Below, in pieces: positions 28,208 through 57,163 of a DNA stretch of 64,000 bases. The notes beneath the pieces are model-generated. The model saw only the letters and a list, made by a program, of their open reading frames with translations. It searched no databases and was not told where the DNA came from. The DNA is taken from contig OZ218963.1 in NCBI GenBank assembly GCA_965112735.1, forward strand, positions 2,356,001 to 2,420,000. The letters run 5' to 3'. A program made the position numbers and the translations under genes. Position 1 is the first letter of the stretch. The number at the start of each line of letters is the position of its first letter. The stretch is from Phaeosaccion multiseriatum (lineage: Eukaryota; Protista; Ochrophyta, other classes).

Positions 28208-28329
28208 GAAGACGGTTGCGGAGTAGGCCACTCGTCCATGCCACATCGGAAGCCAGTGGCCCCTTTTAATACACTTTGCTCTCGTTCTTACAAGTAGAAT
28301 CCATAAAGCTTTATCCCACCAGGAGTGAA

Positions 28330-29007: not shown

Positions 29008-29107
29008 GCACACAACGCCTTTGCTATTAAATTAAATTAAAGAAATGTTACGTAATCTAACGGGATAAAGGGCCGCCACACGCATTCACATAGGCCAGTT
29101 GGTGTTT

Positions 29108-29778: not shown

Positions 29779-30002
29779 TTCACGGGGGTAGCTGCCAGCC
29801 TAGCAAAAGGATGCCTTCTTACATGCCCAGACGGGGTTCGATTCTGTGGATGGTGAGAAAATTTCCGAGGGCGACAGTTGGGCATGACACTGAAATTCAC
29901 GGGCTCGGTGTGGGAGAAATCCTAGGTAGTTACCCCCCCAAGGTTTTCGGAGGAGTTTCCGGAGGGGGGGGAAGGATCGACCTTAACTGACAGGCATGTA
30001 AG
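29779..30002. mobile_element. Family-B half hairpin plus spacer
   Basis: TTCACGGGGGTAGC...CTTACA then full B spacer; second hairpin cut after TGTAAG. Confidence 0.85.
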
Positions 30003-30344
30003 TGTTAGAAGTCGTGCTTTTGCTAGACTGGTACCTACCCTCTGAATTCAGACCGGGAGGTACCAGTCTCGCAAAAGCACGACTTCTAACAAGGCCATTG
30101 CGAGTTCGAACCCTGGCTGTAGCTTGTGAAAAAAAGTGTGTTTTTCGGCGAAAACTGGTACCGGCTTGCACCCATTAGTCTGATTCCCAGACTGCGAGTT
30201 ACTTCTCTCCACTATGTGCGGTGGGGGGGGGGGGTTCGACTTCTACCAATGGGCTTGTTAGCAGTCGTGTTTTTGCTAGACTGGTACCTCCCGGTCTGAA
30301 TTCAGAGGTTAGGTACCAGTCTAGCAAAAGCACGACTTCTAACA
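30003..30344. mobile_element. Family-A element H-S-H
   Basis: H 30003-30091 and 30256-30344; TSD not preserved. Confidence 0.88.
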
Positions 30345-30604
30345 GTGCCCGATACCGAGAAGCGGCCCAGGAAGCGCAATCGCAAGGCTAACCTCATTCC
30401 AGACAGCCAGTCCGCCAGTAAGATGTATGGTGGGCCTTGCGGACCTCGCTATAAAGTGTAAAAAGAGGGGGGTAAAGCTCTTTGTTGTTCATCCACTAGC
30501 TAGTCGCCAGTTGTGGTAGGGAAATTCTAAAATTTAGCACGATAATCGCCCTAGGGACATCACCGTGGCGCTCGGCTCCCCGCAGGCATAATCTCCCCTC
30601 CCCC

Positions 30605-31059
30605 TGTAAGAAGGCATCATTTTGCTAGGCTGGCAGCTATCCACTGAATATTCACGGGGGTAGCTGCCAGCCTAGCGAAAGGATGCCTTCTTACATGCCT
30701 GTCAGTTAAGGTCGATCCTTCCCCCCCCTCCGAAAACCTCCGAAAACCTTGGGGGGGTTATTACCTAGGATTTCTCCCACACCGAGCCCGTGAATTTCAG
30801 TGTCATGCCCAACTTTCGCCCTCGGAAATTTTCTCACCATCCACAGAATCGAACCCCGTCTGGGCATGTAAGAAGGCATCCTTTTGCTAGGCTGGCAGCT
30901 ACCCCCGTGAATAATGGATGGTGAGAAAATTTCCGAGGCAGGGCGAAAGTTGGGCATGACACTGAAATTCACGGGCTCGGTGTGGGAGAAATCCTAGGTA
31001 GTTTTGCCATAAATATTCAGTGGATAGCTGCCAGCCTAGCAAAAGGATGCCTTCTTACA
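30605..31059. mobile_element. Family-B inverted dimer (partly deleted), ~220 bp upstream of GMD
   Basis: H-S'-half H-S(part)-half H; TSD CCCC (within a C-run). Confidence 0.85.
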
Positions 31060-31280
31060 CCCCCCCCTGAGCCCCACTGAGAAGCCTGAAGCCCGCGCTG
31101 GCCTGCGGCCAGAAGCCCGAAGCCTGGAGGGGGCTATGGCCCAGAAGCCCGGAGCCCGAGAAGCCCTGCGGGGAGCTCCGATGGCGCCGCAGGCGAGGAA
31201 AATTTCTAATTTCTTTTTGTTCTCCTTTTTTGGGGCCACTTTGCGCCCCTTTTTAAACACAGACACACAACCCTATATAG

Positions 31281-32520
31281 ATGGCGGATATTGCAAAGCC
31301 AAAGGTTGCCCTCATAACCGGCATCACGGGCCAGGATGGCTCCTACCTCGCGGAGCTGCTGCTGGAGAAAGGATACGTGGTGCATGGCATCATTCGCAGG
31401 TCGTCTTCATTCAACACGTCGCGCATCGACCACCTCTACCAGGACCGCCACATCAAGGATGCCAAGCTCTTCCTGCACTACGGTGACCTGACGGACTCCA
31501 CCAACCTCGTGCACATCATCTACGAGACGCAGCCGGACGAGATCTACAACCTTGGCGCCATGTCTCATGTGAAGGTCGGTGAAGCAGAGGGGAAGTTTTG
31601 GAGAGAACATGGAAATTGGAAGAGGGGAGGGGAGCACTCTTCGTTGTTATGCGTATGCATGCTCTCTTTAACTTGCTATCGAAACAGAACTTGAGAACTC
31701 TTATCATCTCGCGACGATGTTCTTTCGTTTCAAGGTGTCCTTTGAGATGTCCGAGTACACAGCAGAGGCCGACGGCGTTGGCTGCCTGCGCCTCCTCAAC
31801 GCCATGCGCTCGGTGGGCCTGGAGAAGAAGTGCCGCTTCTACCAAGCCTCCACCTCGGAGCTGTACGGAAAGGTGCAGGAGATCCCCCAGAAGGAGACTA
31901 CGCCCTTCTACCCTCGCTCCCCCTATGGAGTGGCCAAGCAGTACGCCTTTTGGATGCTCATCAACTACCGAGAGGCCTACGGCATGCACCTCACCAACGG
32001 TATTCTCTTCAACCACGAGAGCCCCCGCCGCGGTCCCACTTTCGTGACGAGGAAGATTACTCGGGCAGTGTCTCGCATCCACCGCGGCCAGCAGGACTGT
32101 CTCTTCCTGGGCAACCTCGACGCCAAGCGAGACTGGGGACACGCTCGCGACTACGTCAAGGGCATGTGGCTCATGGTGCAGAGGGACACGCCGGAGGACT
32201 ACGTGCTCGCCACGGGAGAGTGCCACGAGGTGCGCGAGTTCGTCGACAAGGCCTTCGCCTACGCGGGCATTACCATCGTGTGGGAGGGCAAGGGGGTGGA
32301 CGAGAAAGGCTACAACGCCACCGATGTCGAGAAGAAGAACCCTCTCGTGCAAGTGGACCCGGAGTACTTCAGGCCCACGGAGGTGGAGCTGCTGGTGGGC
32401 GACCCTTCCAAGGCCAAGCGCGAGTTGGGGTGGGAGCCCGAGGTGACTTTCCAAGAGCTCGTCAACGACATGATGAAATCAGATCTCGAGCTTGTGGACA
32501 AGGGCGACAAGCACTCTTGA
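31281..32520 (+). CDS. GMD: GDP-mannose 4,6-dehydratase; exons 31281-31574 and 31735-32520 (359 aa)
   Basis: [70 protein letters not shown]; one phase-0 GT-AG intron. Confidence 0.98.
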
Positions 32521-36227: not shown

Positions 36228-36332
36228 AGTTGTATTTTTGCTAGACTGATACCTACCCTCTGAATTTCACGGCGGTAGCTGTCAGCCTAGCAAAAGGATG
36301 CCTTCTTACATTCCCAGACGGGGTTCGATTCT
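36228..36332. mobile_element. Chimeric A/B hairpin plus start of B spacer
   Basis: Left arm TTTGCTAGACTGATACCTACCCTCTGAA (A), right arm TTCACGGCGGTAGCTGTCAGCCTAGCAAAAGGATGCCTTCTTACA (B). Confidence 0.75.
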
Positions 36333-37290: not shown

Positions 37291-38145
37291 TAAAAAAAAT
37301 AAAAAAAAACCTGCAACTACCCCACCACAGTGGTGACGGACCATCAGTCCTTGTTGTGGTTGGCTGGGCACGAGGATACCAATTCCAAGCTGTTCAGATG
37401 GTACGAGCGGCTCTCTACGCACCACTTGCAGTTTGTGCATCGTCCCGGGAAGCAAATGGTGGTGCCTGACTGCCTCTCTCGCAACGCACTTCCGGTGCAG
37501 GAGTGGGCGACGCATGCGGGGGTAGACTTGGCCATGGTTGCGTGCGAGCGGCCGTCGCCCTTGCACACCTGGTGTGCTTGGATGGGGGTGCAGTTGAACC
37601 TGGTGGAAGGAAGGGGAGAAGGGAGCTTTCATTGGGAGGAGCCAACGGAGGGAGCACTGCTTCGCTTTCTCGCAGTGGCGCAACAGCTGCAGGGCGAAGC
37701 CGACACACGCCTGCCTATTCCTGTGCCTGCTGTGACGGCCCAGCAACAGCAGCAACGGTGCCACCACCAGCAGCAGAGCGGAGTGGAGGCCCTACAAGCC
37801 TGGCAGACTGCAGAGGTGGACTTGTCTGCGACGCAGTCTGTGGAAAGTCGTGCTTAGACCTCCACGAAACGGACTAGACACACAGATAAGGTAGCAGCAC
37901 CCCAAAGCTAGCCTGACAGCCGGCCTTGTATCTATTAGCTTATCTATGCACTGTCCTAAACGACCACCTACAGGAGGATAGTGAGAAACGGGCACCGTTT
38001 CTCACTGCGTTGCCTAGGCCTGGGCCACTGACATACGACTGACTTTCCACATCCCCGTCAGCCATCCCTGCACTTCTAACACTCCCCTGACAAGACTCCG
38101 GCACACTTCATCGCGTCAATCTCCTGCTGCCACTGGCGCTCCTCC

Positions 38146-39153: not shown

Positions 39154-39876
39154 CTTCCCTCTTGCTGCGCCCCTGCAGCTGCTCCCTCCGAGCGTGCCTA
39201 ATTATGCCTGATATCCGTGCCTGCTGCTGCTGCTGCTGCCTCTGCAGCTGCTGCGGTATCCAACACCTGCTGCTGCGCCCCCTGCCTCTCCAGCCAAGCC
39301 TGCTGTATCTCCTGCCGCTAACCTCTAAATCAGCGGTCCCCTCTGATTAAGTATAGCGGATACCCGTGCCTCCTGCTGCTGCCCCTGCAGCTGCTGTATC
39401 CAATCCCTTGCTGCTGCCCCTGCAGCTGCGCGCCAATCCTTCCGTGCCTCCTGCTGCTGCCCCTGCAGCTGCTCCTTGCAATATCCCTAGCTACCTCTTG
39501 CTGCCGATCCACGGTAGCGCTGCTGTGCCACTCTTTCAAAGCCAAGCAATAAATTCTCCCCTGTGGTAGATTGTCCTGCCTGAGGGTTTCCGGTCACACA
39601 TTCTGGGGTATAATAAGAATGTCGGTTTCCTAGGCACGCCCCGAGGGGGTTCAACGGCTCTAGCGTTTCACCCTCCTCTTTGTGGGCACAAGCTTTGCAT
39701 CAGCAAGTAGTAGAGATATATTATCAATACGGACACTGACGCCCCACCATAGGCGCAGCATATACTTAGTCCAAACCCCTTAACGTTTCTACTATCTTAG
39801 CTTAGCACAGAACTAGTTCTCGCTTTAGAAAAGCTTTGGAGAAGGATTTTCTCGGACCGATTGGAGGAGCGGCATC

Positions 39877-42800
39877 ATGGCGGTTCAAGGCATCATCATG
39901 AGGGACCCAACCCATTATCCGGAGATACGGACGCCTCTATCTGCGGAAGTCGTCAGCGAGTTCTTACTGCAGTACGATCAGTCCGCGCTCAGGGATAGGG
40001 ACAAGCCGCTGGATATCCCCAGCATGGTGCAGCTCATCGACCCAGCCCATCGTTTTGGAATAGCCATCGCCAATCAAGTGTCGGAGGCTCAGCTCACGTC
40101 CAAGATGGTACGGGATTACTTGGAGAGGTGGTTGAAGAAGAATCGCAGGGAGGACGTCAACGGAAATGCCACTCTCAACGAGATAATCAGGAAGACGGTA
40201 CTCGTGTAGTCACTATGATCCGGACCCTCTCCAATTCAAGCACAATCTTCAGTACATGTGCCAGCAATACCTTCGCATGATCCACGAGTCAGCAGCAAGG
40301 AAGGAGTACCTGAACTTGAACCCCACCGATACGAATTTCCTTGGTCCGAACGGAAAGCACGCTGCCAAAGGGATGCAGCGAGGCTTACTCACCATCATCA
40401 AGAATTATGACCCATGCATGGAGAAGATGCTGGTGGACGCGTTCAAAGATGGACAGAAGGACTGGGGAGAGCATCACGGGGAGTGGATGGAGAAATTCGT
40501 CAGACACTTGTGCCAGTGGGCCACCATGAGAGCGGCAGCACGGCGTATCGGCGGTAAGGCCGAACATTTCCTTCCCGGACTCAAGGGTGACCAAGGGGCA
40601 TCTGGAGGCGGCGGGGGAGGCGGTGGTGGGCAAGGCAAAGGTGCAGGCGGCAAGCGCAAGTGGCAGCAGGAGCAGCAGCCAAAGCGTACGGGTGCAGAGA
40701 CCTCCTCGAAGGAGACAGCAGCGGGCAAAGAGACAGCCAGCAACCCATTGAAGAAGGCCCGTACTCCGAAGTGCTGGGCCTGCGACAAGCCGCATCGGAT
40801 TGACGACTGCCCTACAACCACTGCCGAAGACAAGAAACGCATCAAGGCAGAGAAACAGAAGGCGTGGGAGCAGAGGAAGGCTGAGGCGAAGAAACCGGGG
40901 GTGACGTCCGTCTCATCTTCTTCGGCTGCGGCAGGTGTTTCTTTGCCAGGGCCAGTTGCTATGGACCTCACGGGAGACCGCATGAGCGTGGTTCTCGTGA
41001 ATGACACGACTCCGGAGGTGCGGATGTCGGCGCAAGCCCTGTTTGACAGCGGATGCGATGTGGGTATGGTCATGGGTGGTGACCTGGCTCGCACGTGGGT
41101 CGGAAAGGGTGGTGGCGTACTAGAGGCCTGTGAGCCTTCGGAGTGCGTCACTGCTGCTGGACCTGTGACTGCCAACGAAGTGTTGTGCGGCAGTCACCTT
41201 GAGATAGAGCTGAGTCATGGAAGCGTGAGTACAGCGCAGCTGGACAAGGAGTTCAGATCCATGTTGGTTCTTGAGAGCTTGGGCAGCAGACTGATTCTGG
41301 GCCGGCCTTTGCATAAGGCACTGGGCTTGGAGTCTTTGACTGAGCAGTTGCACAGAGTGCACGAGAAACGGTCGGAGGAGACCCTGCAGAGGGAGCGTGA
41401 CGACGCTTCCCCTGCGACAGGGGCTGCCCCGACTAAGCAGCAGAGTGTTGAGAAGAGCGTGTGTTCTATGGGCGTTGAGACCATCCAAGACTATGCTGAT
41501 TTTGAGGCAAGCAACTTCCCCGTGCAAGTATTGGGGGTAGGAGCGCAGGAGGTTGCGGCCGAGAGCCCCCCTCCTGTCGCCAGTGCAGAGGCACCAGAGG
41601 TTAGCGCCATTGGCGGCCAACCGCTTAATAGTAAAGACCGTGAAGAGTGTGAAGGTGTACCGGATACTATTCAAGGGCCATCAGAGGGAGTTCCCCCTTC
41701 TGAGGCACGCCGTAGAGAGGTGCTAGGTCCCATTGTGGACAAAGCAATCACTGATCATGATTTCCCTGCGGAGCTGAGAGAGCCAATGATGGAAGCTCTC
41801 TTAGAGTTCGACGTGTGGCGGGAAGAGTTGCTCTTTAGCGACGGCCCCGCTAACGTAGAGCCAATGGAGGTGACGTTTACCAATAAGGTACCGAGCTCCC
41901 GTCTCCCCATAAGGCAACAAGGCGCAAAGGGTGCTTTTGTAAATGACTTTTGCAACAAGTTGATAGACAAAGGCCTGGGTTATAGCAACCCGCAGAGCGC
42001 TCATGGCAGCCCGGCGTTTGCAGTGGGCAAACCCGGCAAGCCAGGCAAGTACCGTATCGTCTGCGACTTTCGCGAAGTCAATGAAAAGGTACAGAAGGTC
42101 GATTTTGGGATGATGAACATTGAAGACGCCGTAGCCTCCATGTTGGGTTGCCTATGGTTCATCGAGATAGATGGGGTTGACATGTATTGGCAATTCCCAC
42201 TAGGCAAGTTGAGCCAAGTTGCTCACACCTATATATTCCCAAATGGCAAAGTGACGCCAACTCGAGTACCCCAGGGGGCTAAGAACTCGGGCGCTTACGT
42301 CCAAGGCCAGATGACCCACCTCTTTCGCAAAGAGTTGTGCAAGACCCACGCCGTCTACATTGACAACGTAGCGTACTGGGCAAAGGTGGGAGAGGAGATG
42401 GTGAGTCTCACTCGATTGACGATGAAGCGCCTCCACAGTGCCAACATCAAGATAGGATTGAACTCGTTCCGTTTCGGTAGCGAGCTCAAGTTCCTTGGCC
42501 GCGTGCACGACCGACGCGGCACACGACATGACCCCGCCAGAGTGCAGGGCCTGACCAGTCTCGCGGCCCCAGAGACGGCTGGAGATTTGATGACTTTCTT
42601 CTGCAGCCTGCAGTGGTTTCATCGATACATCAAGGACTTCGCTAAGCTAGTGGGTCCTTTGAACGCGCTGTTGAACAAAGCCCTCGGGCAGGCTAACGCT
42701 AAGCCTCATCAGCACAAGCGCTCCAAGGCAGTGGCCAAGACGATTCCATTGGCTTCTGTGGGGTGGGACACAGAGCACGACGACGCTTTCTTCCAGATCA

Positions 42801-45721
42801 AGCGCGTTCTTGCACAGAACACGGTGCTGTCGCACCCAGACCCAACCAAACTGGCACTGGTATTCCCAGATGCTAGTGACCTCTACTGGGGATGTATGAT
42901 TACATACATAGACCCCAAAGAGCTGTGCCTTCCGGTACATGAGATGAACCACATCCCGGTGGCCTTCGGCTCAGGCGCCTTTGAAGGCGCAGAGCTGAGG
43001 CGTGCCACCATCGACAAGGAAGGAGACGCGACACTCCGAGGCTTGATCCAGAACGAGTACGCTTTGGTCGGTGCACAGAAAGTGCACATCTTTTGCGACC
43101 ATCGCAACTTGGCGTTCATGATGAGCAACGACAGCAAGTACCCTGGCATGACTAAGCCTATGAGGGACAGGCTGCAGCGTCAGGCCGTGCGCCTTCAGAG
43201 CTTTGACTATGTCATTGTCCACTTCCCTGGTTATCTCCATGATTGGGCCGACCCCATTAGCAGGCGGTACACGCACCCGGTGAGCCTCACCCCTAGTGTG
43301 CTCGCCTTGGGCAAGTTTGGGCCCATGCAAGTGTTTGACACTATGTGTGACGACTTCACTTGGCCCTCCACAACTGAGATTGCCAGTCTGCAGGCCGACG
43401 CTCTTCAGGAGCTCCAGCAGGCTAGCAAGGAGGTGGGAGAGAACGGGCGCCGCCTGCTCCTCTCATCAGTTGGCGACGACGGGTTGATTCGAGCGTGCCA
43501 TCCGACGAGCAACCCCGCTGACAGCACCCGCATTTGGATTCCCTCGGTGGGAGCCAAGGCGGAAGACATGCACCTGAGGCTGTGTGTGACTGGCCATCAG
43601 GGTATGATGGGCCATCAGGGAGAGACAAACACCCTGAGTGCTATTAAGGAGAAGTTCATCTGGCAGTCGCTAGACAAGGACGTGCGCAGCCTCGTTCAGA
43701 ACTGTCTCCACTGCCTCACCAACGGCAAGGGCGAGAGAGTGCCTCGCCCCCTGCTAGCTCAATGGCACGCCACTGGACCCCAGCAACTCATCTGGTTTGA
43801 CTTCGTCAAGATTGGCGATGGAGTCATATGGGCAGAGTCCCCAGAAGGGTTCATGAAGCTTCAGGTCAAGCAAGTGCTGTGCATCTTTGATGATTTTTCA
43901 TCATTGTCAATGTATGAGCCATGTTTGGAAGCTACTGCACGAGTGTGTGCACGCGGTCTGTTGCGCTGGTTCGCACAGCATGGCGTAGTGCCCAGGTGGC
44001 AGAGTGACCGAGGCAGTCATTTCCTAAATGAGGTGATACGTGAGTTAAGTCAGCTCTTGCGGTGCAACCACCACTTTGTGGTGGCACACAACCCATACAG
44101 TCGAGGATTGGGCGAGCGTGGTGTACAGACACTGCAGAAGATCATGAGATCAATGATGTCTGAACTACGGCAGCCGCCCGAGACATGGCCGCAGCTACTG
44201 CCAGTGATGGAGGCTGTTGAGAACAGCTCCAACAAGAGCAGTCGGTCTAACTTGTCTCCCATCCAGCTGCACAGTGGTCACGTACCACAGCGGCCTCTCG
44301 ACACGATTTTGATCCACGACGCGGATCGAATGCAAAAGGTTCGGCTACTGCAGCTGACCCCGGCGCAGAGAGACACCCTTGCGACACAACTCCATCAGAG
44401 GAAGGAGGGGCAGCGTGCCGAGGCGGCGCGCCAACTGACTACCCTCCGCGATCACAAGCGCGATGGCATCAACCAGAGGTTGATGAGTGGCAGACGTGGT
44501 GCAGAGCATCGTCAGGACTTGGCCAGAGCTAAGCAGCTCAACAGCGAGACGCTGTTTCAGGTCGGAGTCTACGTACTCGTTGCAACAGTAGGGCCTACAA
44601 GCAAGATACTAGGCAAGTGGCATGGGCCCTGCCGAGTGCTTGAAGCCCTTGAGCAACACGTGTACAAGGTGGAGGAGTGTTAGAAGTCGTGCTTTTGCTA
44701 GACTGGTACCTACCCTCTGAATTCAGACCGGGAGGTACCAGTCTAGCAAAAGCACGACTTCTAACAAGCCCTAATGCTAGAAGTCGAACCCCCCCCCCCC
44801 CACCGCACATAGTGGAGAGAAGTAGCTCGCAGTCTGGGAATCAGACTAATGGGTGCCAGCCGGTACCAGTTTTCGCCGAAAAACACACTTTTTTCACAAG
44901 CTACAGCCAGGATTCGAACTCGCAATGGCCTTGTTAGAAGTCGTGCTTTTGCTAGACTGGTACCTACCCTCTGAATTCAGACCGGGAGGTACCAGTCTAG
45001 CAAAAGCACGACTTCTAACACAAGTTCAGAGGGTAGGTACCAGTCTAGCAAAAGCACGACTTCTAACACAAGGCCATTGCGAGTTCGAACCCTGGCTGTA
45101 GCTTGTGAAAAAAGTGTGTTTTTCGGCGAAAACTGGTACCGGCTGGCACCCATTAGTCTGATTCCCAGACTGCGAGTTACTTCTCTCCACTATGTGCGGT
45201 GGGGGGGGGGGGGTTCGACTTCTAGCATTAGGGCTTGTTAGAAGTCGTGCTTTTGCTAGACTGGTACCTCCCGGTCTGAATTCAGAGGGTAGGTACCAGT
45301 CTAGCAAAAGCACGACTTCTAACAGGAGCTTGTGGGCAAGAAGCGTACCTATGAGGTACACATCAGCCGGCTCCGCTACTACTGCGGTGCTCACGTTAAC
45401 GTCACTACCGACGTACTTCAACAGATTTCGTATAACACCCAAGACTTTGTGGTGGAGGCCTTTGAAGGCCTCGTTAAGCACGCAGATGCTTCATGGCACG
45501 TCATTGTTAAGTGGCGTGGCTTTGACGCCCTCGAGAATAGCGAGGAGCCCATCGAGGCGCTGCACGAAGATACTCCACGTTTACTGGAGACCTACCTGCA
45601 GCACCATCAGGACAAGCAGTTGATCAGCGCAGTCCGAGCCTATCTGCGCAAGACTACGACGCGATCGGCTACTAAGCCGCCGCGCTCCGCGCGCACACGA
45701 AAGTGGACACAAACTAGATAG
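39877..45721 (+). pseudogene. gag-pol (Zn knuckle, protease, RT, RNase H, integrase, chromodomain); frameshift near 40200 and family-A insertion at 44678
   Basis: CWACDKPHRIDDC; LFDSGCD; YRIVCDFREVN, YIDN; FPDASD, CDHRNL; SDRGSHF; VKWRGFDALENSEEP. Confidence 0.93.
44678..45324. mobile_element. Family-A inverted dimer
   Basis: H-S-H-half H-S'-H; TSD GGAG; empty site in the sister copy at ~63405. Confidence 0.95.
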
Positions 45722-46705
45722 ACACACTTACTTCCCAGTCGGCTCGAACTGTCGCTTGGGGGTAGTGTGGTAGATTGTCCTGCCTGAGGGTTTCCGGTCA
45801 CACATTCTGGGGTATAATAAGAATGTCGGTTTCCTAGGCACGCCCCGAGGGGGATCAACGGCTCTGGCGTTTCACCCTCCTCTTTGTGGGCACAAGCTTT
45901 GCATCAGCAAGTAGTAGAGATATATTATCAATACGGACACTGACGCCCCACCATAGGCGCAGCATATACTTAGTCCAAACCCCTTAACGTTTCTACTATC
46001 TTAGCTTAGCACATCCCACAAATAAATTCTCCCACCGGTTCCCAAGCAAAGCCAAGCCAAGCAAAGCTAATTAAGCTAAACGCCCCTGACGGAGCAAGCT
46101 GTGGCGTGTCCGTGCCTTGGACACTAACCAAAAACGTCCACGTGCTAGTCTAGCGCACGATGAACTCAAAGTCTCCCTCTGCTGAGCCTATTGGTCAAGT
46201 GCCAAACTGTCTTCGAGCTTTGGGGTTGTGGAAAGTCGTGCTTAGACCTCCACGAAACGGACTAGACACACAGATAAGGTAGCAGCACCCCAAAGCTAGC
46301 CTGACAGCCGGCCTTGTATCTATTAGCTTATCTATGCACTGTCCTAAACGACCACCTACAGGAGGATAGTGAGAAACGGGCACCGTTTCTCACTGCGTTG
46401 CCTAGGCCTGGGCCACTGACATACGACTGACTTTCCACATCCCCGTCAGCCATCCCTGCACTTCTAACACTCCCCTGACAAGACTGTTGCGTGTCCCCAC
46501 GCAACTCAAGCGTTTTCACCTACTGAAGCTACACTGTAGCAAACCCCTTTATGCTGCTTCCAAAAAAACCGGATGAGAAATATGCAAAACTCACCCACCA
46601 GTGTGTGACGTGGCACTCCACAGGTCACCCTGCCACACACCTGCCACGGCAGGGTGAGAAAGCCCAAGGCCTCAAACTAACCCTCCGTGGCTGCGCACGG
46701 CTGCG

Positions 46706-49030: not shown

Positions 49031-49684
49031 TGTAAGAAGGCATCCTTTTGCTAGGCTGGCAGCTATCCACTGAATATTCACGGGGGTAGCTGCCAGCCTA
49101 GCAAAAGGATGCCTTCTTACATGCCTGTCAGTTAAGGTCGATCCTTCCCCCCCCTCCGAAAACTCCTCCGAAAACCTTGGGGGGGTAACTACCTAGGATT
49201 TCTCCCACACCGAGCCCGTGAATTTCAGTGTCATGCCCCACTTTCGCCCTCGGAAATTTTCTCACCATCCACAGAATCGAACCCCGTCTGGGCATGTAAG
49301 AAGGCATCATTTTGCTAGGCTGGCAGCTATCCACTGAATAATTTTAATTTTTTTATTCAGTGGATAGCTGGTTTTTATTCAGTGGATAGCTGCCAGCCTT
49401 GCAAAGGATGCCTTCTTACATGCCCAGACGGGGTTCGATTCTGTGGATGGTGAGAAAATTTCCGAGGGCGAAAGTTGGGCATGACACTGAAATTCACGGG
49501 CTCGGTGTGGGAGAAATCCTAGGTAGTTACCCCCCCAAGGTTTTCGGAGGAGTTTTCGGAGGGGGGGGAAGGATCGACCTTAACTGACAGGCATGTAAGA
49601 AGGCATCCTTTTGCTAGGCTGGCAGCTACCCCCGTGAATATTCAGTGGATAGCTGCCAGCCTAGCAAAAGGATGCCTTCTTACA
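49031..49684. mobile_element. Family-B inverted dimer
   Basis: H(49031-49121)-S'-central H(49295-49420)-S-H(49594-49684); TSD CACG. Confidence 0.95.
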
Positions 49685-50383
49685 CACGTACGTGTCTACG
49701 CCGAGGCACGTGCAGGCTCTATCGACTCAGTTGCGTACAGCCAAAGTGGTCGCCATGGATTCGGAGTGGGCGCGTCACCGACGGCGCGCGTCGCTGCTGC
49801 AATTGGCCGTGCAGGTTGGGCCGCTGCCGGATGTGGCGCGTGACTATGGGCTCTTGATTGATCTAGACGCGCATCAGAAGGCGGGGGGTATGATGGTACT
49901 GGCGCAAGTGTTGCGGGACCTGTGGGCCGAACCTTCGATTGTGAAGCTGGCTCACCACTGGAGTCACGACCAACGTGCCCTGGGCCGATGGCCGGCGCTC
50001 GCGGAGCATGTCCAGCACATCGTCGACTTGGTGGACACCAGTGACCTCTTTAAGCGCGTGTGCCCCGAACATGCTCAGTTCATCGGACTCCAGGACCTTG
50101 TCAGCATGTTTTTGGAGCAACACCTTAGCAAGGAGGAGCGGGCCACCGATTGGACGAAGCGGCCGCTGTCCGCCGCTCAACGGGAGTACGCGTTTGCTGA
50201 CGCTGCGGCGCTCCTTCGCCTCTGGCCTCGCATGGCGGAGTGTGTGCCGTTCGTCCATGGTGGGCCGGGGGTGGAGCTTAGCGCGATGAGCCCTGCTCAC
50301 ACTCCTGCGGAGCAGGAGGAGATGCAAGTCGGCAGGTTCATGCAGGCCGCGGTTGGTTATTGGGGCGATCGCGACCACGTGTC

Positions 50384-50857
50384 TGTTAGAAGTCGTACTT
50401 TTGCTAGACTGATACCTGCCCTCTGAATTCAGACCGGGAGGTATCAGTCTAGCAAAAGTACGACTTCTAACAAGACCGTTGCTAGAGGACGAACCCCCCC
50501 CCCCACCGCACATAGTGGAGAGAAGTAACTCGCAGTCTGAGAGGGCAGGTATCAGTCTAGCAAAAGTACGACTTCTAACAAGGCTAGTTGTGAGTTCGAA
50601 CCTTAGCTGTCGCTTGTGAAAAAGCGTATTTTTCGGCGAAAACTGTTACCATGGTCTTTCTCGCTCTGAGGCCTTCCAACAGCCCATGATGCTGATTCTC
50701 AGACTGCGAGTTACTTCTCTCCACTATGTGCGGTGGGGGGGGGGGGGTTCGTCCTCTAGCAACGGTCTTGTTAGAAGTCGTACTTTTGCTAGACTGATAC
50801 CTCCCGGTCTGAATTCAGAGGGCAGGTATCAGTCTAGCAAAAGTACGACTTCTAACA
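50384..50857. mobile_element. Family-A inverted dimer (partly deleted)
   Basis: H-part S-half H-S'-H; TSD TGTC. Confidence 0.93.
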
Positions 50858-53444
50858 TGTCACCGCTCTACATCTTTGGTGTCCACTCCAAGACGTTGGA
50901 GGTATTCGACCTGGCCAAACTGCAATTCAAACTGCAGTGCTCGTGGGAGACAATGATGCAGATGGTGGAGCGGTTCACGCGGACATATAAGCGCCAGCGG
51001 AAGGTGGTGGGCGCGTTGGCCAGTCATCTAGATACCATGATCGAGTTGCCATGGAAGCAAGTCCGTCAGGTGTCGCGTGACTACTTCTCGATGTGCACAC
51101 CAGCGGAGGCTCAGCAAACGGGTGCCGCGGCCGCTCATGCGTGGGCTGCATGGGAGGCCGAGCTTGAGGAGGATGCGTCTCGTCTGCTCTCGGAGGTGTG
51201 TCCAGCTGCCGTTGCTGGTGCCACCGAGGGTGAGGAGCTCGTTCCGGAGGAGGGCCGCATCACCCCCCCTGGGGAGCCGCCTGCTGCGGAGTCGCCGTCG
51301 GAGCCTGGTACGGCAGATCTACTGGTCACGGAAGAAGCAGGGGATGCAGGTAATGAAGCTGAGGATGCAGTGGATTCAGTTTCCAAGGAGCCGGGGGAGC
51401 AGGAGTCCACCTTGCAGCGCGAGCTTGATGGACATCGACGAGAGGCAGAGCGACAGTTTGGGTGGTCTCTACCAGGCACGGTGCCTGCTGCCGCGGCGCA
51501 CAGACGAGCGGCTGGAGCTTTGGGTGGCAGTCTGCATGTCGAGGCCGCGTGGTGGGTGCGTGCGCAGCGGGCTGATGCGGAGCTGGAAGCACTCCGTCGT
51601 CGTGTTCAGGCTGGGCCCACCGGCGGCGTGGTGGATGCAGGTGGGGGTGAGTTCTTTGTGGATGAGGACGGGCTCTTGATGCGTAAGTGGGCTCCTGGGG
51701 GCTTTCGGTGGCGGGTGCGGCACACTCGGCTACAAGTATGTGTGCCCAAGGAGATGCGGCCAGCCTTGCTGCATGCCGCCCACACCGATGCCATCGCAGG
51801 TGGGCACCAAGGCCCGGGACGTATGCTGGACGCGCTGCAAGAGCGCGTATGGTGGGAGAAGATGAATGCACATGCGCTGTATTGGGCCCGCTCCTGTCTG
51901 GCGTGTCAGACACGCAAGACTCCTCGCCGGCAGCCAAAGCCTGTACCGCTGTCGTCCATTTCCAAGGTGGATGGACCTTGGGCGGTCATGGGCGCTGATG
52001 TGGCTGGCCCCTTTCCTATGGGCATGGGCGGTGAGGAGTACCTCTTGGTGTTTCAGGATTGGTTCACGAAGTGGACAGTGGTGGTGCCTTTGAGGGCACA
52101 GGACTATACGGCGGAAGGTATTGCTCGGGCCTTCGTGCGGCATGTCGTCACCACCCTGGGTGTGCCCCGAGTGCTGGTGAGTGATCAAGGCTCGCAGTTC
52201 ACCAGTGCGCTCATGGGCGATGTGATGCGGGTTCTATCGGCGTCGCAAGTGTTCACGACGCCGATGCACCAACAGGCCAATGGGCAGGTGGAGCGCTTCA
52301 TGGCCACGATCAAGGACATGTTGGCGACGACCGTGGAGTCACAGATGCAGCAGTGGCCAGATTACGTCGCCGGGCTCACCTATGCGTACAACTGCCGCTC
52401 GCAGGAGAGCACGGGGATGGCGCCATTCTACGCCTTGTTCGGTCGGCACCCCCGGGTGCCTCTACAGGAGATGCTTCCGGCGCTAGTGGAGGACGGGTCG
52501 TTTTCGTCTGCCTCGGCATGGGTCCACGAACTGCGGGCACGTCTGGCTGCGGCTGCGGCGGTGGTCAATGGGAGGCGCTGCGACTACCACGGGAGATTGC
52601 AGCTGAAGAACGCCTCACGCCGTTGGCCGACGCCCCTGCGACCCGGAACCAAGGTGATGTTGTATCGTCCTGGTGCCGCCGCCCAGCAAGAAGGGGAAGA
52701 ACTCGAAGGGCCCCCGTCAGCGCAACTCAAGGCTCTGCAGCATTCGTGGGATGGTCCTTATACAGTCTTGCCTTGGCCATCTCTGGGGGGCTACTGTGCT
52801 CAGCATGGGCGGGTGAGTGAAGAGCACTATCAGGTCATGCAGCGCAGCGCAGTGTATCTGTCTATGAAACGGGTGCGCGGCAATGGTGTGGAGCAGCTGC
52901 AACGGGCGTACCACAGAGACTGGACGAAGCCGTTCATCGATGGGGTGAGCGAGCGGCCTTTCGGTCTCCCGGAAGGGTTCGCCAGGTATCATATCCGTTG
53001 GTGCTCTCCTCAGTGGGCTACCAGCGCAATGCAGGAGCAGCGTAGCTTAGAGCTGGACGAGGTGAGTGAAGGGAAAGTGCCCACGCTGGCGAGGATTGTG
53101 AAGTTCCGCTGGCGCAAAGCCACGGGGCTGCCACTGCGGCGAGAGTATAACGTGCGGTGGGCGGTGGCGGACGGCGGCACTTTCCAGACCTGGGAATGGG
53201 CTGAGTGGTTGCTGGAGCGGGGACACGCCAAGGCCATAGAGGCGTTCGAGAACGCCCTTCCGCACACTGCCCTTGATCCAGGAGTGAATGTCAAAAGAGG
53301 GCATAGGTCTAAACGGGAAAGCACGTTCCGTCTGCGGCAACATGAGAAGTGGGGCAGCGGGCTGGCGCACGAGACGCAATTCTATCGCTCGCATCTCGGC
53401 TTCTGAGGGAGCTGGCGGAAGAGGCGGGGGCGTAGTGAGGGGGA

Positions 53445-53639
53445 TGTTAGAAGTGGCCTAGTTGGGGTCCCTTGGGGACCCAATCAGTAGTGTAACGGCC
53501 GGAAAACGGGCCAACGAGACGGTAAATCAGTAATAAAGAAAGGAAGCGCAGCCTGCGTGTGGGCTGGCTTCCGGGTGCTTGCTTCAGCTTCTGCTCTGCT
53601 CTAGCTTGGCTTTGAGGCTAGCTGTCGGTAGTTTCGACA
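53445..53639 (+). mobile_element. Putative 3' LTR of the exonuclease-gypsy
   Basis: PPT GAGGGGGA then TGTTAGAAGT...TTTCGACA; AATAAA inside; right end inferred, no partner LTR in window. Confidence 0.65.
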
Positions 53640-53703
53640 CAGTTCATCATCTCCGCGGACTACACCATAGAGCAGCAGCCACAGCCAGGCGTTACGATGG
53701 CAC

Positions 53704-53888
53704 TGTAGCCTATATGAAGGCAACAAAAATATCGCCCATTCAAGGGTATCGATACCCATCCAAGAAGATGTAGAAGTCCTATGGGTACCTCAAGTCCACA
53801 TGAAACAGGAAAATAGTAGCTAAGAATGCTCAGATGGGAATTGAACCCGAGAGTGGTAGAGATTTTTGTTGCCTTCATGTAGGCTACA
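53704..53888. mobile_element. 185-bp TGT...ACA MITE-like element
   Basis: TIR TGTAGCCTA(T/C)ATGAAGGCAACAAAAAT; no TSD match. Confidence 0.6.
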
Positions 53889-54174
53889 CTACCCACTTAG
53901 ATTAGTATTGCGGCAACAGCACGCAGTTTGGCTGCGAAGTGTACACACAGGTGCTGGCTGGAGGCGGAGAGTGAGGTCGACGACGATGACGACGACGACG
54001 ACTCGCCTCCACCAAAGCGGGTTGTGATTGCGGATGAGCTCGAGCAGCGCGAGCAGCAGCGGCAGGCAGAGTGTAGCTAGGCAGCAGGAGCAGCAGGCAC
54101 AGCAGCAAGTGCAAGCAAAGCAGGCACAGCGCAACATGTCTCAAGGGTCCATCAACTCTATACTCGGACACGTG

Positions 54175-54519
54175 TGTTAGAAGTCGTACTTTTGCTAGAC
54201 TGATACCTGCCCTCTGAATTCAGACCGGGAGGTATCAGTCTAGCAAAAGTACGACTTCTAACAAGACCGTTGCTAGAAGACGAACCCCCCCCCCCCCACC
54301 GCACATAGTGGAGAGAAGTAACTCGCAGTCTGAGAATCAGCATCATGGGCCAGCAAGCTGGTAACAGTTTTCGCCGAAAAATACGCTTTTTCACAAGCGA
54401 CAGCTAAGGTTCGAACTCACAACTAGCCTTGTTAGAAGTCGTACTTTTGCTAGACTGATACCTGCCCTCTGAATATTCAGAGGGCAGGTATCAGTCTAGC
54501 AAAAGTACGACTTCTAACA
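54175..54519. mobile_element. Family-A monomer H-S-H (345 bp)
   Basis: TSD CGTG. Confidence 0.95.
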
Positions 54520-54527
54520 CGTGTTCT

Positions 54528-54880
54528 TGTTAGAAGTCGTGCTTTTGCTAGACTGGTACCTACCCTCTGAATTCAGACCGGGAGGTACCAGTCTAGCAAA
54601 AGCACGACTTCTAACAAGCCCATTGCTAGAAGACGAACCCCCCCCCCCCACCGCACATAGTGGAGAGAAGTAACTCGCAGTCTGGGAATCAGACTAATGG
54701 GTCAGCAGGCCAGCAAGCCGGTACCAGTTTTCGCCGAAAAACACGCTTTTTTCACAAGCTACAGCCAGGGTTCGAACTCGCAATGGCCTTTTTAGATGTC
54801 GTGCTTTTGCTAGACTGGTACCTCCCGGTCTGAATATTCAGAGGGTAGGTACCAGTCTAGCAAAAGCACGACTTCTAACA
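54528..54880. mobile_element. Family-A monomer H-S-H (353 bp)
   Basis: TSD TTCT. Confidence 0.95.
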
Positions 54881-55035
54881 TTCTTCATGCCTGGCCTTCG
54901 GGAGGAGGAGGTGCCCGAGCACAAGAGCATCAACGAGGCGCTCAATGGCGAGTCCGCTGAGGAGTGGAACGAGGCGTTACACAGAGAGGGCAATAGCCTG
55001 GAGCAGCACAAGGTCTGGGAGGTGGTTCCGCGGAC

Positions 55036-55244
55036 GTTCGATTCTGTGGATGGTGAGAAAATTTCCGTGGGCGAAAGTTGGGCATGACACTGAAATTCAC
55101 GGGCTCGGTGTGGGAGAAATCCTAGGTAGTTACCCGACCTTAACTGACAGGCATGTAAGAAGGCATCCTTTTGCTAGGCTGGCAGCTACCCCCGTGAATA
55201 TTCAGTGGATAGCTGCCAGCCTAGCAAAAGGATGCCTTCTTACA
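55036..55244. mobile_element. Family-B partial (deleted spacer plus H 55154-55244)
   Basis: Match to 49430-49684. Confidence 0.85.
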
Positions 55245-55526: not shown

Positions 55527-57163
55527 TGTTGGGATATCTCCCTCCTGGAGACTAGTGTCGTACTTGCACGAGTGTGGGAAAGCGTCTTATTAGCTACATA
55601 ACACGAAAAGAAGAAGAAGTGAACGGACTTGTACCAGCGATATGAGATCGATATCTAGTGTCGACATCGATTTATCTCAACACACCTCCTCGCCTGGTAC
55701 TGTCCATTCCGCTAACTACGCCCTAAAACCCATCATCTTTTCACGTAAAGCTACAAGTACTGCCGGGGTCACATGCTTCGTCAAAAGGTCAGCCAACTGC
55801 GCCTTCGAAGCCACGTACTCAAATGCAATAAGAGCCTCCTTCACTGCGTCTTGCAGAAAATGAAACCGAACATCAATGTGCTTCATCCTCCGTGTCGATG
55901 CATTGCTCTCTGCCAGCTTGATACACCCCATGTTGTCCTCAAAAACAACTGTCGCCTTCGACGAGTCATCAGGGAACAAGAAACTCAATACCTGCCTAAT
56001 GTATAATATTTCCTTCACACAGTCACTGGCCGCCATGTACTCGCTCTCCAGCGAAGACATCGCCACACTCAGCTGCAATCGCACACCCCAAGTGATAGCT
56101 GCACCTCCGTACATCAAAGCATAACCAGTCGAACTCCTGCGAGTGTCAACACATGCAGCGTAATTCGCGTCTGCATATGCTTCCAAAACACACTCGCCCT
56201 TGCCAAACACCAAAGCACGATCCACAGTACCCTTCAGGTACCCAAACACACGCATAGCCTGCTTCCAATGCTCAGGGCCGGGGTTCTTCATATACCGCGA
56301 CAACTCTCGAACAGCATAGGCAATATCAGGCCTTGTCCAGTTTGAGATCCACATCAAAACGCCCACCACACCGGGGTAGTCCTTGTCAGTCATAAAAGCT
56401 ACATCAGCTGCAGACGAGGGCTCCATACTCTTGCTGAGTGCTGTGCCAGACACACCGGGTGTCGAGTAAACTCGATCAGACTCCAAACCAAACTTCACTA
56501 TCATCTTCTTGATGTAGTGCTCCAATGTCAATGTGACAGTGCCTACGCTCCGGTTGAACACAACGCGCACTCCCAAAAACTGATCAACATTGGGCCCAAG
56601 TCTCTTCAACGAAAACTTGTTGTCCAGCTCTGTAAAGAGCCAGTCCACCACCTCCTGCTTTCCGCCGCAGGACAAATCATCAACAAATACAATGAGGATG
56701 CCAACAAGCTCCCCATTCTTCCACAAAACAAATAAACACGGCTCAGCGCCGCACTGTTGCCATCCAAGCTCAAGCAGAAACTTCACCAATGTCTGATACT
56801 GTGCTAAGTTCAGATAACGTCTTATTATCCTGAACCTCTAGTATTGCGCAATACTAGAGGTCGCAATACTAGAGGTTCAGGATAATAAGACGTTATCTGA
56901 ACTTAGCACAATACCAACGTCTCGGTGCCTGATGTAGACCATAGAGTGCCATCAGCAAGCGCATGACCTTGCCCTTCCGCAGAAAACCCGGAGGCGGCAA
57001 CACATACACCACCTCATGCTCTTGCAGAGGCGCATGCAGAAAAGCTTGATCCACATCAGCAAACTCACACACAAAACCAGACGTCTTCACGATGAAGAAG
57101 TGAACGGACTTGTACCAGCGATATGAGATCGATATCTAGTGTCGACATCGATTTATCTCAACA
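55527..57163 (-). mobile_element. Internally deleted Ty1/copia element (RT-RNase H retained), inserted in a family-2 LTR
   Basis: 3' LTR 55527-55682, partial 5' LTR ~57095-57163; 5-bp TSD AGAAC; ADVDQAFL, LYGLHQAPRRW, VFVDDL, YADANYA, KHIDVRFHF. Confidence 0.92.
56800..56910. mobile_element. Solo family-C hairpin in copia RT
   Basis: TSD ATAC; excision restores APRRWYQTLVKF. Confidence 0.93.

Follow-up and report, generated by a model that had tools for sequence, protein, structure and literature searches.

The window analysed here, a single stretch of 64,000 nt, holds three families of short repeats (A, B and the similar C) that, judged from their sequence, are most likely non-autonomous mobile elements residing in the nuclear genome of an ochrophyte. 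Each element end in these families is a near-perfect palindrome of 89-116 bp. In families A and B the loop of one end hairpin keeps a single orientation relative to the unit, while the hairpin at the other end occurs direct, mirrored or symmetrised, in a state that is uncoupled from the ancestry of the copies in the window. Breaks and self-templated copying are concentrated at the apex of the hairpins. The explanation preferred here, which we regard as an even call, is that the elements are inserted by an integrase-type enzyme and are altered by fold-back or template-switch copying at the apex of the distal hairpin.

Architecture of the units and of an inverted dimer

Units of families A and B are ~345 bp long and consist of an 89-91-bp near-palindrome, a spacer and a second palindrome. 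Within the 64,000-nt window the 28-nt arm pattern has 41 matches and the full-hairpin pattern 14, against 0 expected for either. Folded as single strands, the hairpins reach -45 to -64 kcal/mol (z -16 to -23), and the asymmetry of their loops lies in the bulges that flank the apex, of one base on one side versus two on the other. Each palindrome carries a TGT... tip at its left and an ...ACA tip at its right, so that any two outward-facing tips are usable as the ends of a mobile piece. The tips read TGTTA in families A and D, TGTAA in family B and TGTGC in family C; the TGTNR tip by which Ginger1 elements are recognised thus fits A, B and D, and family C departs from it at the fifth base. Spacers of A and B are no more self-complementary than shuffled sequences, which rules out the unit as the remnant of one old palindrome; what self-complementarity they have is confined to the 23-28 nt adjoining the hairpins. 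Outside the window, neither the exact arm pattern nor a looser palindromic pattern had a match in metagenome contigs (collections that do not include the host genome), and a stop-free 98-aa reading of the element had none among 1.84 billion protein representatives.

The structure is displayed most fully by a family A inverted dimer, which lies in a Gypsy-type LTR retrotransposon and has the following parts, together with the corresponding empty site.

44674-44677 (no strand): left target-site duplication GGAG, by direct reading; GGAG is single in the paralogue
44678-44766 (+): left unit's outer hairpin, of fixed orientation; near-palindrome of 89 nt, tips TGTTAG...CTAACA (-44.8 kcal/mol, z -16)
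44767-44931 (+): spacer of the left unit; a C run adjoins the fixed hairpin
44932-45020 (+): central variable-end hairpin, a direct repeat identical at 89/89 positions to 44678-44766
45021-45068 (+): rearranged dimer centre, CAAG followed by a half hairpin (half loop and right arm) of the mirrored right unit
45069-45235 (-): spacer of the right, mirrored unit; the arms of the dimer match at 252/254 positions
45236-45324 (-): outer fixed-orientation hairpin of the right unit, from the loop table
45325-45328 (no strand): right target-site duplication GGAG, by direct reading and paralogue comparison
63405-63408 (-): empty site in a second copy of the host Gypsy element, with the 4 bp present once and no insertion

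In the left spacer the ~23 nt beside each hairpin are mutually inverted repeats (p about 0.003), and the spacer as a whole is not palindromic. The second copy of the host element is 99.3% identical over both 300-bp flanks of the 647-bp dimer site. Since the duplication surrounds the whole dimer and the paralogous site is empty, the 647-bp dimer was inserted as one piece; two insertions with duplications of their own are ruled out on the same grounds.

Further copies in the window include monomer units, solo hairpins, a chimera and three more inverted dimers.

1-189 (-): family A unit cut by the window edge, reduced to its fixed hairpin (101-189) plus 100 nt of spacer
1155-1475 (+): family A unit, variable end direct and cut just past the loop by a family C-type arm
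11411-11491 (no strand): solo hairpin of family A, one arm shortened by an internal deletion; duplication GGAG
18379-20923 (+): family B unit, duplication TGGT, variable end (20833-20923) direct
29779-30002 (-): family B unit, variable end an apex-broken half hairpin, with 6 nt of the fixed hairpin left
30003-30344 (-): family A unit, variable end mirrored, no duplication; directly adjoins the initial 6 nt of a family B hairpin
30605-31059 (no strand): family B inverted dimer, CCCC/CCCC flanks in a C-rich context
36228-36310 (no strand): chimeric hairpin, family A left half and family B right half joined at the apex
49031-49684 (no strand): family B inverted dimer, duplication CACG, arms matching at 263/264 positions; centre symmetrised, with AT-rich filler and a short duplication
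50384-50857 (no strand): second family A inverted dimer, of the other subfamily, TGTC/TGTC flanks
54175-54519 (+): family A unit, duplication CGTG; variable-end hairpin (54430-54519) perfectly palindromic over 90 nt
54528-54880 (+): family A unit of the other subfamily at an abutting target, duplication TTCT, variable end mirrored

The two hairpins of the unit at 1155 are identical as direct repeats (59/59), and the spacer of the family B unit at 18379-20923 contains ~2.1 kb of other, nested DNA. Half hairpins broken at the apex occur at 45025, 50541, 29779, 30867 and 31010. The adjacent units at 54175 and 54528 carry their own duplications (CGTG and TTCT) and are therefore two separate insertions, which rules out a replicative tandem spanning 54175-54880.

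Orientation of the two ends and structure of the dimers

The loop beside the C/G run has one unit-relative orientation in all nine family A hairpins, as seen in the loop table and the alignment, and the fixed-end loops of family B agree in 7/7 hairpins, one of them a half hairpin (31010-31059) and another carrying a nested insertion inside the loop (23317). Both counts agree with those given in the earlier note on this DNA, as does its description of the opposite end as mixed or symmetrised, where direct, mirrored and symmetrised states were all found. The variable end of family A is direct at 1417 (cut just past the loop) and 44932, mirrored at 30003 and 54792, and symmetrised as the perfect 90-nt palindrome at 54430, with half hairpins at 45025-45068 and 50541-50580. 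In family B the end at 20833 is direct, those at 29779 and at 30867 are mirrored half hairpins, and the one at 49295-49420 is symmetrised and contains AT-rich filler.

As arms of the same dimer cannot be counted separately, the 16 fixed-end hairpins amount to 12 independent insertions, all from one 64,000-nt window. The fixed end is then 12 same and 0 other versus 4 same and 6 other at the variable end (Fisher p about 0.003, assuming independent insertions), and on a tree of the copies there are at least five state changes at the variable end versus none at the fixed end (p about 0.03). Orientation that merely tracks subfamily ancestry, the outcome that the earlier note had set against its own reading, is absent from the window: a mirrored and a direct copy (U3 and U5) show 0/71 differences in the sequence adjoining the variable hairpin, and a direct and a symmetrised copy (U7 and U8) likewise 0/71. 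Copies with identical flanking sequence thus differ in state, so that change at this end must be fast relative to substitution. Markers are also mosaic between the family A subfamilies in the alignment. A fixed orientation at one end is predicted by plain inheritance as well; it is the variability of the opposite end alone that calls for an explanation.

All four inverted dimers (44678, 50384, 30605 and 49031) have their fixed ends outside, in agreement with the earlier description, although four of four centred on one end corresponds to p = 0.06 one-sided. Their centres are all rearranged, with deletions or filler, and no two are alike. In the dimer at 50384-50857 the left unit is cut inside the spacer and joined to the half hairpin 50541-50580, and that at 30605-31059 has lost parts of its centre and of its right unit and has a half hairpin as its right outer end. 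Arm identities are high (252/254, 155/155 and 263/264 positions), at 99-100% versus the 2-16% by which separate insertions in the window differ. Dimers are present in both A subfamilies and in B and must therefore have formed repeatedly.

The earlier note took one fixed end, one flip/flop end and palindromic dimers as the signature of rolling-hairpin replication in heterotelomeric parvoviruses. On that reading, free linear molecules with self-priming palindromes would undergo parvovirus-like rolling-hairpin synthesis, with hairpin transfer at one end and asymmetric resolution at the other, and the dimers would be replicative intermediates. The contrast between the ends, the palindromic dimers with near-identical arms, the high stability of the terminal palindromes as single strands and the decoupling of the variable-end state from ancestry are all in keeping with it, but the dimers are centred on the wrong end. 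The heterotelomeric model has the left end, which keeps a single orientation, copied as a left-to-left dimer bridge whose asymmetric resolution fixes that end, and only tetramers bring two flip/flop right ends together (PMC1185569); the bridge is thus expected on the single-orientation end, whereas here the centre is the variable one. A single clean central hairpin is also predicted, and 0/4 dimers have one. Neither 4-bp duplications nor LTR-type tips follow from the model, no Rep/NS1-type HUH nickase-helicase Pfam domain was found in the 27 window ORFs of at least 170 aa, and the looser palindromic hairpin pattern had no match in the viral contig collection. With the dimer centre, the lack of a Rep match in the window ORFs, the duplications and the tips all against it, the parvoviral interpretation is not supported, and we consider it very improbable. 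The snap-back, self-primed intermediate that the earlier note also proposed fares better and is plausible; it was the rolling-hairpin mode of replication that found no support.

A second explanation dispenses with copying altogether and treats the families as cut-and-paste MITEs. The fixed end would then reflect descent together with a requirement for movement, and the states of the variable end would arise within the chromosome from the instability of palindromes, by cleavage of a cruciform or hairpin apex, recombination between arms, or template switching at the replication fork. Dimers would form when two copies insert side by side in inverted orientation, or through aberrant gap repair at a donor site, and would subsequently move as long-inverted-repeat elements. 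Double insertions of transposable elements are a known phenomenon (PMC5932611), and an abutting pair is directly visible at 54175/54528; the four bases that part the full hairpin from the half hairpin in the middle of the dimer at 44678 would also fit, as would the 4-bp duplications around all forms, the mosaic markers across subfamilies, and the differing deletions and filler at every dimer centre, which are expected of unstable long palindromes. However, flips after insertion should strike both hairpins similarly, and the counts are none against at least five; the near-identity of the dimer arms compared with separate insertions also counts against it, and copies with identical flanks are already in different states, which demands change that outpaces substitution. 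This explanation is possible, if on the unlikely side.

Target duplications, tips and resident LTR elements

Duplications of 4 bp flank 11/12 testable elements of families A, B and C, and they accompany solo, half and internally deleted hairpins, monomer units and inverted dimers alike. The duplicated sequences (GGAG, TGTC, CGTG, TTCT, CACG, TGGT, ATAC, CCAC and TGCA) are mostly GC-rich. None matches the CCGG or CCGT targeted by Ginger1, and as a set they do not conform to the AT-rich RTATAY target of Ginger2/TDD (targets from PMC2836005). The presence of these duplications on all forms, together with the clean empty site of the dimer, indicates that the elements enter the chromosome through a staggered-cut enzyme of the DDE type.

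The tips point in the same direction through their likeness to LTR elements in the window, of which the relevant copies are as follows.

17506-17759 (+): LTR-like repeat whose first 10 nt, TGTTAGAAGT, are the family A hairpin tip
21206-21459, 11616-11869 (-), 37871-38081 (-) and 46259-46469 (-): further copies of this LTR-like repeat, with a related one from 53445
39562-46013 (+): host Gypsy-type LTR retrotransposon, with 248-bp LTRs (TGTGG...GCACA) at 39562-39809 and 45766-46013
40256-45721 (+): pol gene of the host Gypsy element (RT, RNase H, integrase zinc domain and chromodomain), with one break, caused by insertion

Outside hairpins, the family A 10-mer tip occurs at 6 sites, all of them (6/6) starts of LTR-like repeats, and the family C 9-mer tip occurs outside palindromes at 3 sites, all of them (3/3) 3' ends of Gypsy LTRs; the family C tip matches the Gypsy LTR 3' end at 15/17 positions, exactly at the terminus. 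By this comparison the TGT...ACA tips of the hairpins copy the tips of co-resident Gypsy-type LTRs. TGT-type tips combined with 4-bp duplications are a published signature of integrase-related insertion (PMC2836005; PMC6839031). Two observations count against an integrase explanation: the identity between tips and LTRs spans just 10-17 nt, and the sole complete Gypsy element is flanked by a 5-bp duplication with one mismatch (TCCCC and TCCCA) instead of by 4 bp.

Relatives of the Gypsy pol were found only at 22-24% identity. A separate ORF at 50860-53403, a possible autonomous partner, preceded by a 3'-5' exonuclease ORF, contains integrase zinc and core domains, lacks RT and is closest to Gypsy pol proteins (about 30% identity); its borders bear no outward-facing tips of its own. 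Within the window there is no element that combines an integrase gene with exact A, B or C tips at both of its own ends, which likewise speaks against the integrase explanation, no Ginger-type transposase with such tips, and no intact copy of the LTR family that shares the family A tip. As for host genes, the best match of a GDP-mannose dehydratase exon in the window, at 77% identity, falls among ochrophytes.

The same tips and duplications would be expected if spread were RNA-mediated, with miniature LTR-type or SINE-like retroelements copied by a retrotransposon RT, second-strand synthesis primed by snap-back, and the cDNA inserted by integrase. Under this hypothesis the end hairpins that are identical as direct repeats (89/89 at 44678-45020 and 59/59 at 1155) would resemble regenerated LTRs, the G run on one strand a purine tract, the mosaic copies the products of template switching, and the one-end-centred dimers snap-back at a cDNA end. 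The position of the G run is nevertheless wrong. A purine run lies directly before 5/6 of the LTR-like tip sites (the exception being 17506) and before each of the two Gypsy LTRs, and in the LTR elements of the window the purine-rich run is no more than 3 nt from the TGT tip, as opposed to 21-28 nt in A and B. The end hairpins of A units are direct and identical in some cases (44678, 1155), mirrored in others (30003, 54528) and symmetrised in one (54175), and the mirrored arrangement, seen in 2/6 A units, speaks against this hypothesis. The family A spacer further contains runs of T4 and T6 on one strand and T5 on the other, with a T4 in each left arm, and runs of T4-T6 would stop RNA polymerase III. 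A tRNA-derived SINE is ruled out, as ARAGORN and Rfam found no tRNA-like head and such runs lie inside the unit on both strands; ARAGORN found no tRNA gene in the window, and no Rfam family, ribozymes included, was found. A box-like (polymerase III) motif is no more than a lead. Taken together, RNA-mediated spread seems quite improbable.

Proposed formation of the mobile molecule and comparison with known elements

In the preferred explanation, insertion would be the work of a DDE enzyme of the integrase type (the integrase of a retrotransposon, or else a Ginger-like transposase), acting on a molecule made by directional copying from the C/G-run end towards the other end. On reaching the distal palindrome, the growing strand may fold back on itself or switch arms, which would yield a flipped loop or a perfectly symmetrised hairpin, and if copying continued back along the new strand the result would be an inverted dimer with its fixed ends outside. 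The near end, copied straight through or under constraint, would keep its single orientation, and the copied intermediate could be DNA or cDNA. The direction of copying is deduced from 12 insertions and 4 dimers (p about 0.03-0.06). Signs of self-templated copying are the perfect hairpin at 54430, the apex-broken halves, the apex-joined A/B chimera at 36228 and the identity of the dimer arms, and inverted duplications are documented to arise when single-stranded hairpins fold back and are copied (PMC7467729). Three features count against this explanation: most variable-end hairpins keep both bulges, which a simple one-arm fold-back copy would erase; adjacent double insertion, as at 54175/54528, could build dimers without any fold-back; and no retrotransposon integrase is known to cut an element out of a chromosome, which leaves the free ends without a source.

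A more specific version of integrase-dependent spread, which we rate as unlikely, would have directional copy-out run from the C/G-run end to the distal palindrome, without excision and without a full retroviral cycle. Fold-back there would give the flipped and symmetrised hairpins and the dimers, the double-tipped palindromic products being inserted by the integrase of resident Gypsy-type elements, and the families would then be DNA parasites of that integrase.

If the tip mimicry is functional, small non-coding elements would be borrowing the integrase of LTR retrotransposons or of Ginger-like elements by means of two-tipped palindromic ends, a design that would let a bare 81-116-bp hairpin, a unit or a dimer each act as a mobile piece. 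The contrast between the ends and the fold-back products centred on the apex would together let the making of a mobile intermediate, a step not yet described for integrase-related DNA transposons, be read from sequence, and would do so in an ochrophyte host whose mobile elements are essentially undescribed. Should the pattern dissolve genome-wide, the families would be ordinary MITE-like repeats with unstable palindromes.

Among known systems, Ginger1 and Ginger2 (TDD) share with these families TGT tips like those of Gypsy LTRs, terminal inverted repeats that are tens to hundreds of bp long, and 4-bp duplications (PMC2836005; PMC6839031), but the families described here have other target sequences and each of their ends is itself a palindrome with both tips. 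Foldback elements and long-inverted-repeat MITEs are likewise short and non-coding, with very long inverted repeats, duplications and frequent internal rearrangement; in them, however, the palindrome is formed between the ends, whereas here it lies within each end, the hairpins of a monomer may be direct or mirrored, and the tips copy LTR tips. TRIM/SMART elements and retrozymes resemble the families in being small, non-coding and dependent on Gypsy machinery, with TG...CA repeat ends and short duplications. The families differ from these in that their end repeats are palindromic and not always direct and that, in place of the purine tract abutting the 3' repeat by which TRIMs are recognised, the G run is 21-28 nt from the hairpin. 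Solo and half hairpins with their own duplications set the families apart from both TRIM/SMART elements and retrozymes, as does the lack of any ribozyme match in Rfam, on which grounds a retrozyme is ruled out. Helitrons and IS200-IS605-type elements, which are expected to have sub-terminal hairpins bound by an HUH enzyme and to lack duplications, are ruled out because 4-bp duplications are the rule here, and DIRS/Ngaro-type and Crypton-type elements are ruled out by the presence of duplications. Hairpin-mediated foldback inversions of chromosomes also leave inverted duplications around a short palindrome, the centre being symmetrised or deleted (PMC7467729), but the products seen here are bounded by transposon tips and target duplications and must therefore have formed before, or independently of, their present chromosomal site. 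Heterotelomeric parvoviruses, finally, share terminal palindromes that carry asymmetric bubbles, a single orientation at one end against two at the other, and palindromic multimers; they differ in that their bridge is on the fixed end, whereas the families described here are chromosomal copies with 4-bp duplications and LTR-type tips, joined at the variable end, in a window without a nickase gene.

Hairpin architecture and insertion

The sequence at 44678-45324 is an inverted dimer (two mirrored units) of family A with a unit length of ~343 bp, in which each unit is built of an 89-nt near-palindrome with TGTTAG...CTAACA tips, a 165-nt spacer carrying a run of 12-13 C near this hairpin, and a second hairpin of 89 nt. 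The single-strand fold of the 89-nt hairpin (-44.8 kcal/mol, z -16) is interrupted only by one one-base and one two-base bulge, either side of the apex, and these bulges serve to mark the orientation of the hairpin. The arm pattern has 41 matches in the window versus 0 expected.

Parts of the family A dimer
44678-44766, outer hairpin of the first unit
44932-45020, central hairpin, followed by four bases
45025-45068, half hairpin at the centre, next to the mirrored spacer
45236-45324, outer hairpin of the mirrored unit

The layout of family B is identical, with related arms (TGTAAG...CTTACA), and the window holds three further palindromic families: C, with arms of 55-60 nt and present also as an arm fragment (1476-1500), and D and E (15839-15975, 21752-21814, 28587-28704, 28912-29007), the tips of D being TGTTAC and its duplication 5 bp long, and E lying inside a 310-bp tandem duplication. 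Immediately before the homopolymer run of families A and B (C12-13, 44788-44800; C8, 49152-49159) stands a short, diverged copy of the hairpin's arm tip, and an arm fragment of family C type precedes a run of G13 (1506-1520). The surroundings are repeat-rich eukaryotic DNA of ~55% G+C with Gypsy- and Copia-type pol genes, the Gypsy pol having relatives at 22-24% identity only. A host-gene block (25099-32520) contains an ORF without Pfam match (25099-26259), sulfotransferase-domain ORFs (26628-28207) and a GDP-mannose 4,6-dehydratase exon (31717-32520) whose best identities are 77% (brown alga) and 76% (another eukaryotic entry), the remaining named matches being mostly further ochrophytes. The stretches 3811-5298, 8600-9760, 11200-11600 and 12219-13144 hold tandem arrays of 114-bp, 36-bp and 113-bp repeats and long GAG/GGA-type triplet arrays, the latter giving rise to long spurious ORFs.

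Of 12 elements in families A, B and C that could be tested, 11 are flanked by direct duplications of 4 bp; the twelfth, the A unit at 30003, has no duplication at its flanks.

Elements and their 4-bp duplications
44678, A dimer, GGAG
50384, A dimer, TGTC
54175, A unit, CGTG
54528, A unit, TTCT
11411, solo A hairpin, GGAG
49031, B dimer, CACG
30605, B dimer, CCCC (weak, in C-rich surroundings)
18379-20923, B unit, TGGT
56800-56910, solo C hairpin, ATAC
23357-23414, internally deleted C hairpin of 58 nt, inside a B loop, CCAC
6116-6497, C hairpin-spacer-hairpin unit, spacer strongly palindromic (z ~10), TGCA

The dimer at 44678 lies in a Gypsy element (39562-46013), within its pol gene. This element has another copy in reverse orientation (63012-64000, running past the window end; LTR end 62720), which shows 99.3% identity across the two 300-bp flanks of the dimer; the alignments of the two flanks overlap there by exactly four bases, so that the 647-bp dimer represents a single insertion with a 4-bp staggered cut. 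The pair at 54175-54880 was considered as a tandem and rejected: it consists of two insertions from different subfamilies with abutting targets, CGTG then TTCT (54515-54531), which indicates that new copies land directly at the tip of a resident hairpin. Five separate hairpin-element insertions are found within 6.2 kb (49031-55244); ACGTG is present in three of the five targets (49031, 50384, 54175), and GGAG occurs as a target two times elsewhere, which suggests a target or regional preference.

Orientation of the two ends

Loop orientation was compared using a loop table and two alignments (A1, A2) in which all units run the same way. As seen in the earlier note, the hairpin adjoining the C/G run (the fixed end) has a single orientation, in 9/9 cases in family A and 7/7 in family B (one of the seven being only a half hairpin and one carrying a nested insertion at its apex). 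That the unit's other hairpin (the variable end) differs among copies also holds for both families, the loop table and the alignments agreeing with the lists of the earlier note, and all four inverted dimers have their fixed ends outside, again as noted there. Half hairpins occur at both family A dimer centres.

Orientation states of hairpins
Family A, fixed end: 101, 1155, 30256, 44678, 45236, 50384, 50769, 54175, 54528
Family A, variable end, direct relative to the first hairpin: 1417, 44932
Family A, variable end, mirrored: 30003, 54792
Family A, variable end, perfect 90-nt palindrome: 54430
Family B, variable end, direct: 20833
Family B, variable end, mirrored in halves: 29779, 30867
Family B, variable end, symmetrised with filler: 49295-49420

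A fixed orientation is already predicted by inheritance alone, and the informative signal is the variable end. The 16 fixed-end hairpins amount to 12 independent insertions, and all results come from the one window. Two pairs of units have 0 differences over the 71 nt adjoining the hairpin and differ in state (U3, mirrored, versus U5, direct; U7, direct, versus U8, symmetrised). The variable end requires at least three state changes in family A (neighbour-joining spacer tree) and at least two in family B, versus 0 in either family for the fixed end (sign test, p ~0.03). Orientation counts of 12/0 versus 4/6 give ~0.003 in Fisher's test with insertions treated as independent, and the single polarity of the four dimers reaches p = 0.06 only. 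Given the identical flanks and the changes on the tree, orientation does not follow ancestry alone in this small sample; tracking of ancestry alone is what the earlier note had counted against its own reading. The distal end thus switches state faster than substitutions build up, and the near end is unchanged.

Probable fold-back copying at the hairpin apex

Arm identity within three of the dimers is 252/254, 155/155 and 263/264, and separate insertions diverge by 2-16%. The two A dimers come from different subfamilies, so dimers arose on at least two occasions. At 54430 the left half of the hairpin has been copied back exactly, with one extra base pair at the tip of the loop, and half hairpins broken at or beside the apex are common. 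In a chimeric hairpin (36228-36310), which a B spacer follows, the left arm with its half loop is of family A and the right arm with its half loop of family B, the join lying at the apex. Apices are also insertion sites of other elements. The hairpin apex is a hot spot of breakage and self-templated copying. The dimer centres are all different (one-and-a-half hairpins, loss of spacer, AT-rich filler, or a deletion reaching the mirrored spacer). Plain cut-and-paste, together with double insertion and instability of palindromes in the chromosome, would account for these messy centres as well as for the target duplications, but it offers no account of change in only one of two equivalent hairpins, and this main rival is considered rather unlikely.

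In alignment A1, three units (1-189, 1155-1475, 54528-54880) mix diagnostic positions of both A subfamilies (e.g., the hairpin of one type with the spacer of the other), which points to recombination, conversion or template switching among copies.

LTR-type tips and comparison with known systems

The tips of family C correspond to the Gypsy LTR (39562/45766) at its 3' end, the 17-mer at the end of the host LTR agreeing at 15/17 positions and exactly terminally, and the family A tip is identical over 10 nt to the start of an abundant LTR-like repeat. Outside hairpins the A 10-mer marks LTR starts in 6/6 cases, and outside palindromes the C 9-mer marks LTR 3' ends in 3/3; past the shared 10-17 nt, arms and LTRs are unrelated. 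A third tip of TGT type (TGTTGGAAGG, from an LTR-like repeat) directly adjoins the apex of a half hairpin of family B (29765-29779), and one arm of the 50384 dimer has a 33-nt piece with the TGTTGGAAGG tip in its spacer (~50660-50692). The families are mobile, non-coding, double-tipped, palindrome-ended elements that have LTR-like tips and insert in one piece, with a stagger of 4 bp.

A purine run directly precedes 5 of the 6 tip sites of the LTR-like repeat carrying the A tip. The hairpins of two units, direct and identical, would agree with an RNA route with reverse-transcriptase snap-back; a purine run that is displaced, units that are mirrored and T runs inside the unit weaken this route, and it is quite improbable.

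Pattern scans, two of metagenome contigs and one of viral contigs, gave no match to the element, nor did a search at the protein level in which a reading of it was the query, and no autonomous partner of the hairpin families was identified in the window. An ORF at 50860-53403 encodes Gypsy-type integrase zinc and core domains without a reverse transcriptase, and its integrase shares only 24% identity with that of the other Gypsy element. Upstream on the same strand is a 3'-5' exonuclease ORF (PF01612, RNase D/Mut-7-like), with no reverse transcriptase or RNase H within or between the two ORFs; this gene region (49692-53406) has one interruption, by insertion, and after it come a purine run and, at 53445, an LTR-type TGTTAGAAGT tip. 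The integrase ORF may be the source of the enzyme. An integrase-type enzyme would carry out insertion, a directional copying step would make the molecule to be inserted, and at the distal palindrome fold-back or a switch of arms would produce flips, symmetrised hairpins and dimers; this scheme as a whole is held with moderate confidence.

TGT-type tips with 4-bp duplications are a published mark of Gypsy integrases and integrase-related Ginger transposons (PMC6839031, PMC2836005). The two target preferences of Ginger transposons are not seen in the duplications here, and the sole complete Gypsy element of the window has a 5-bp duplication with one mismatch. Minute virus of mice and its relatives have a single-orientation left end, which does not act as an origin in hairpin form and is copied into a dimer bridge with asymmetric resolution; their right end flips and is resolved either as a hairpin or inside tetramers (PMC1185569). 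The dimer polarity found here is the opposite, no Rep/NS1-type domain was found in the 27 ORFs scanned in the window, and the 4-bp duplications and LTR-type tips are foreign to the parvoviral mechanism, so that the rolling-hairpin replicon of the earlier note appears very improbable. The snap-back intermediate proposed with it fares better: such a step is plausible, and the near-identical dimer arms, the symmetrised hairpin and the half hairpins point to self-templated copying at the apex. Likeness to parvoviruses goes no further than terminal palindromes that carry an asymmetric bubble.
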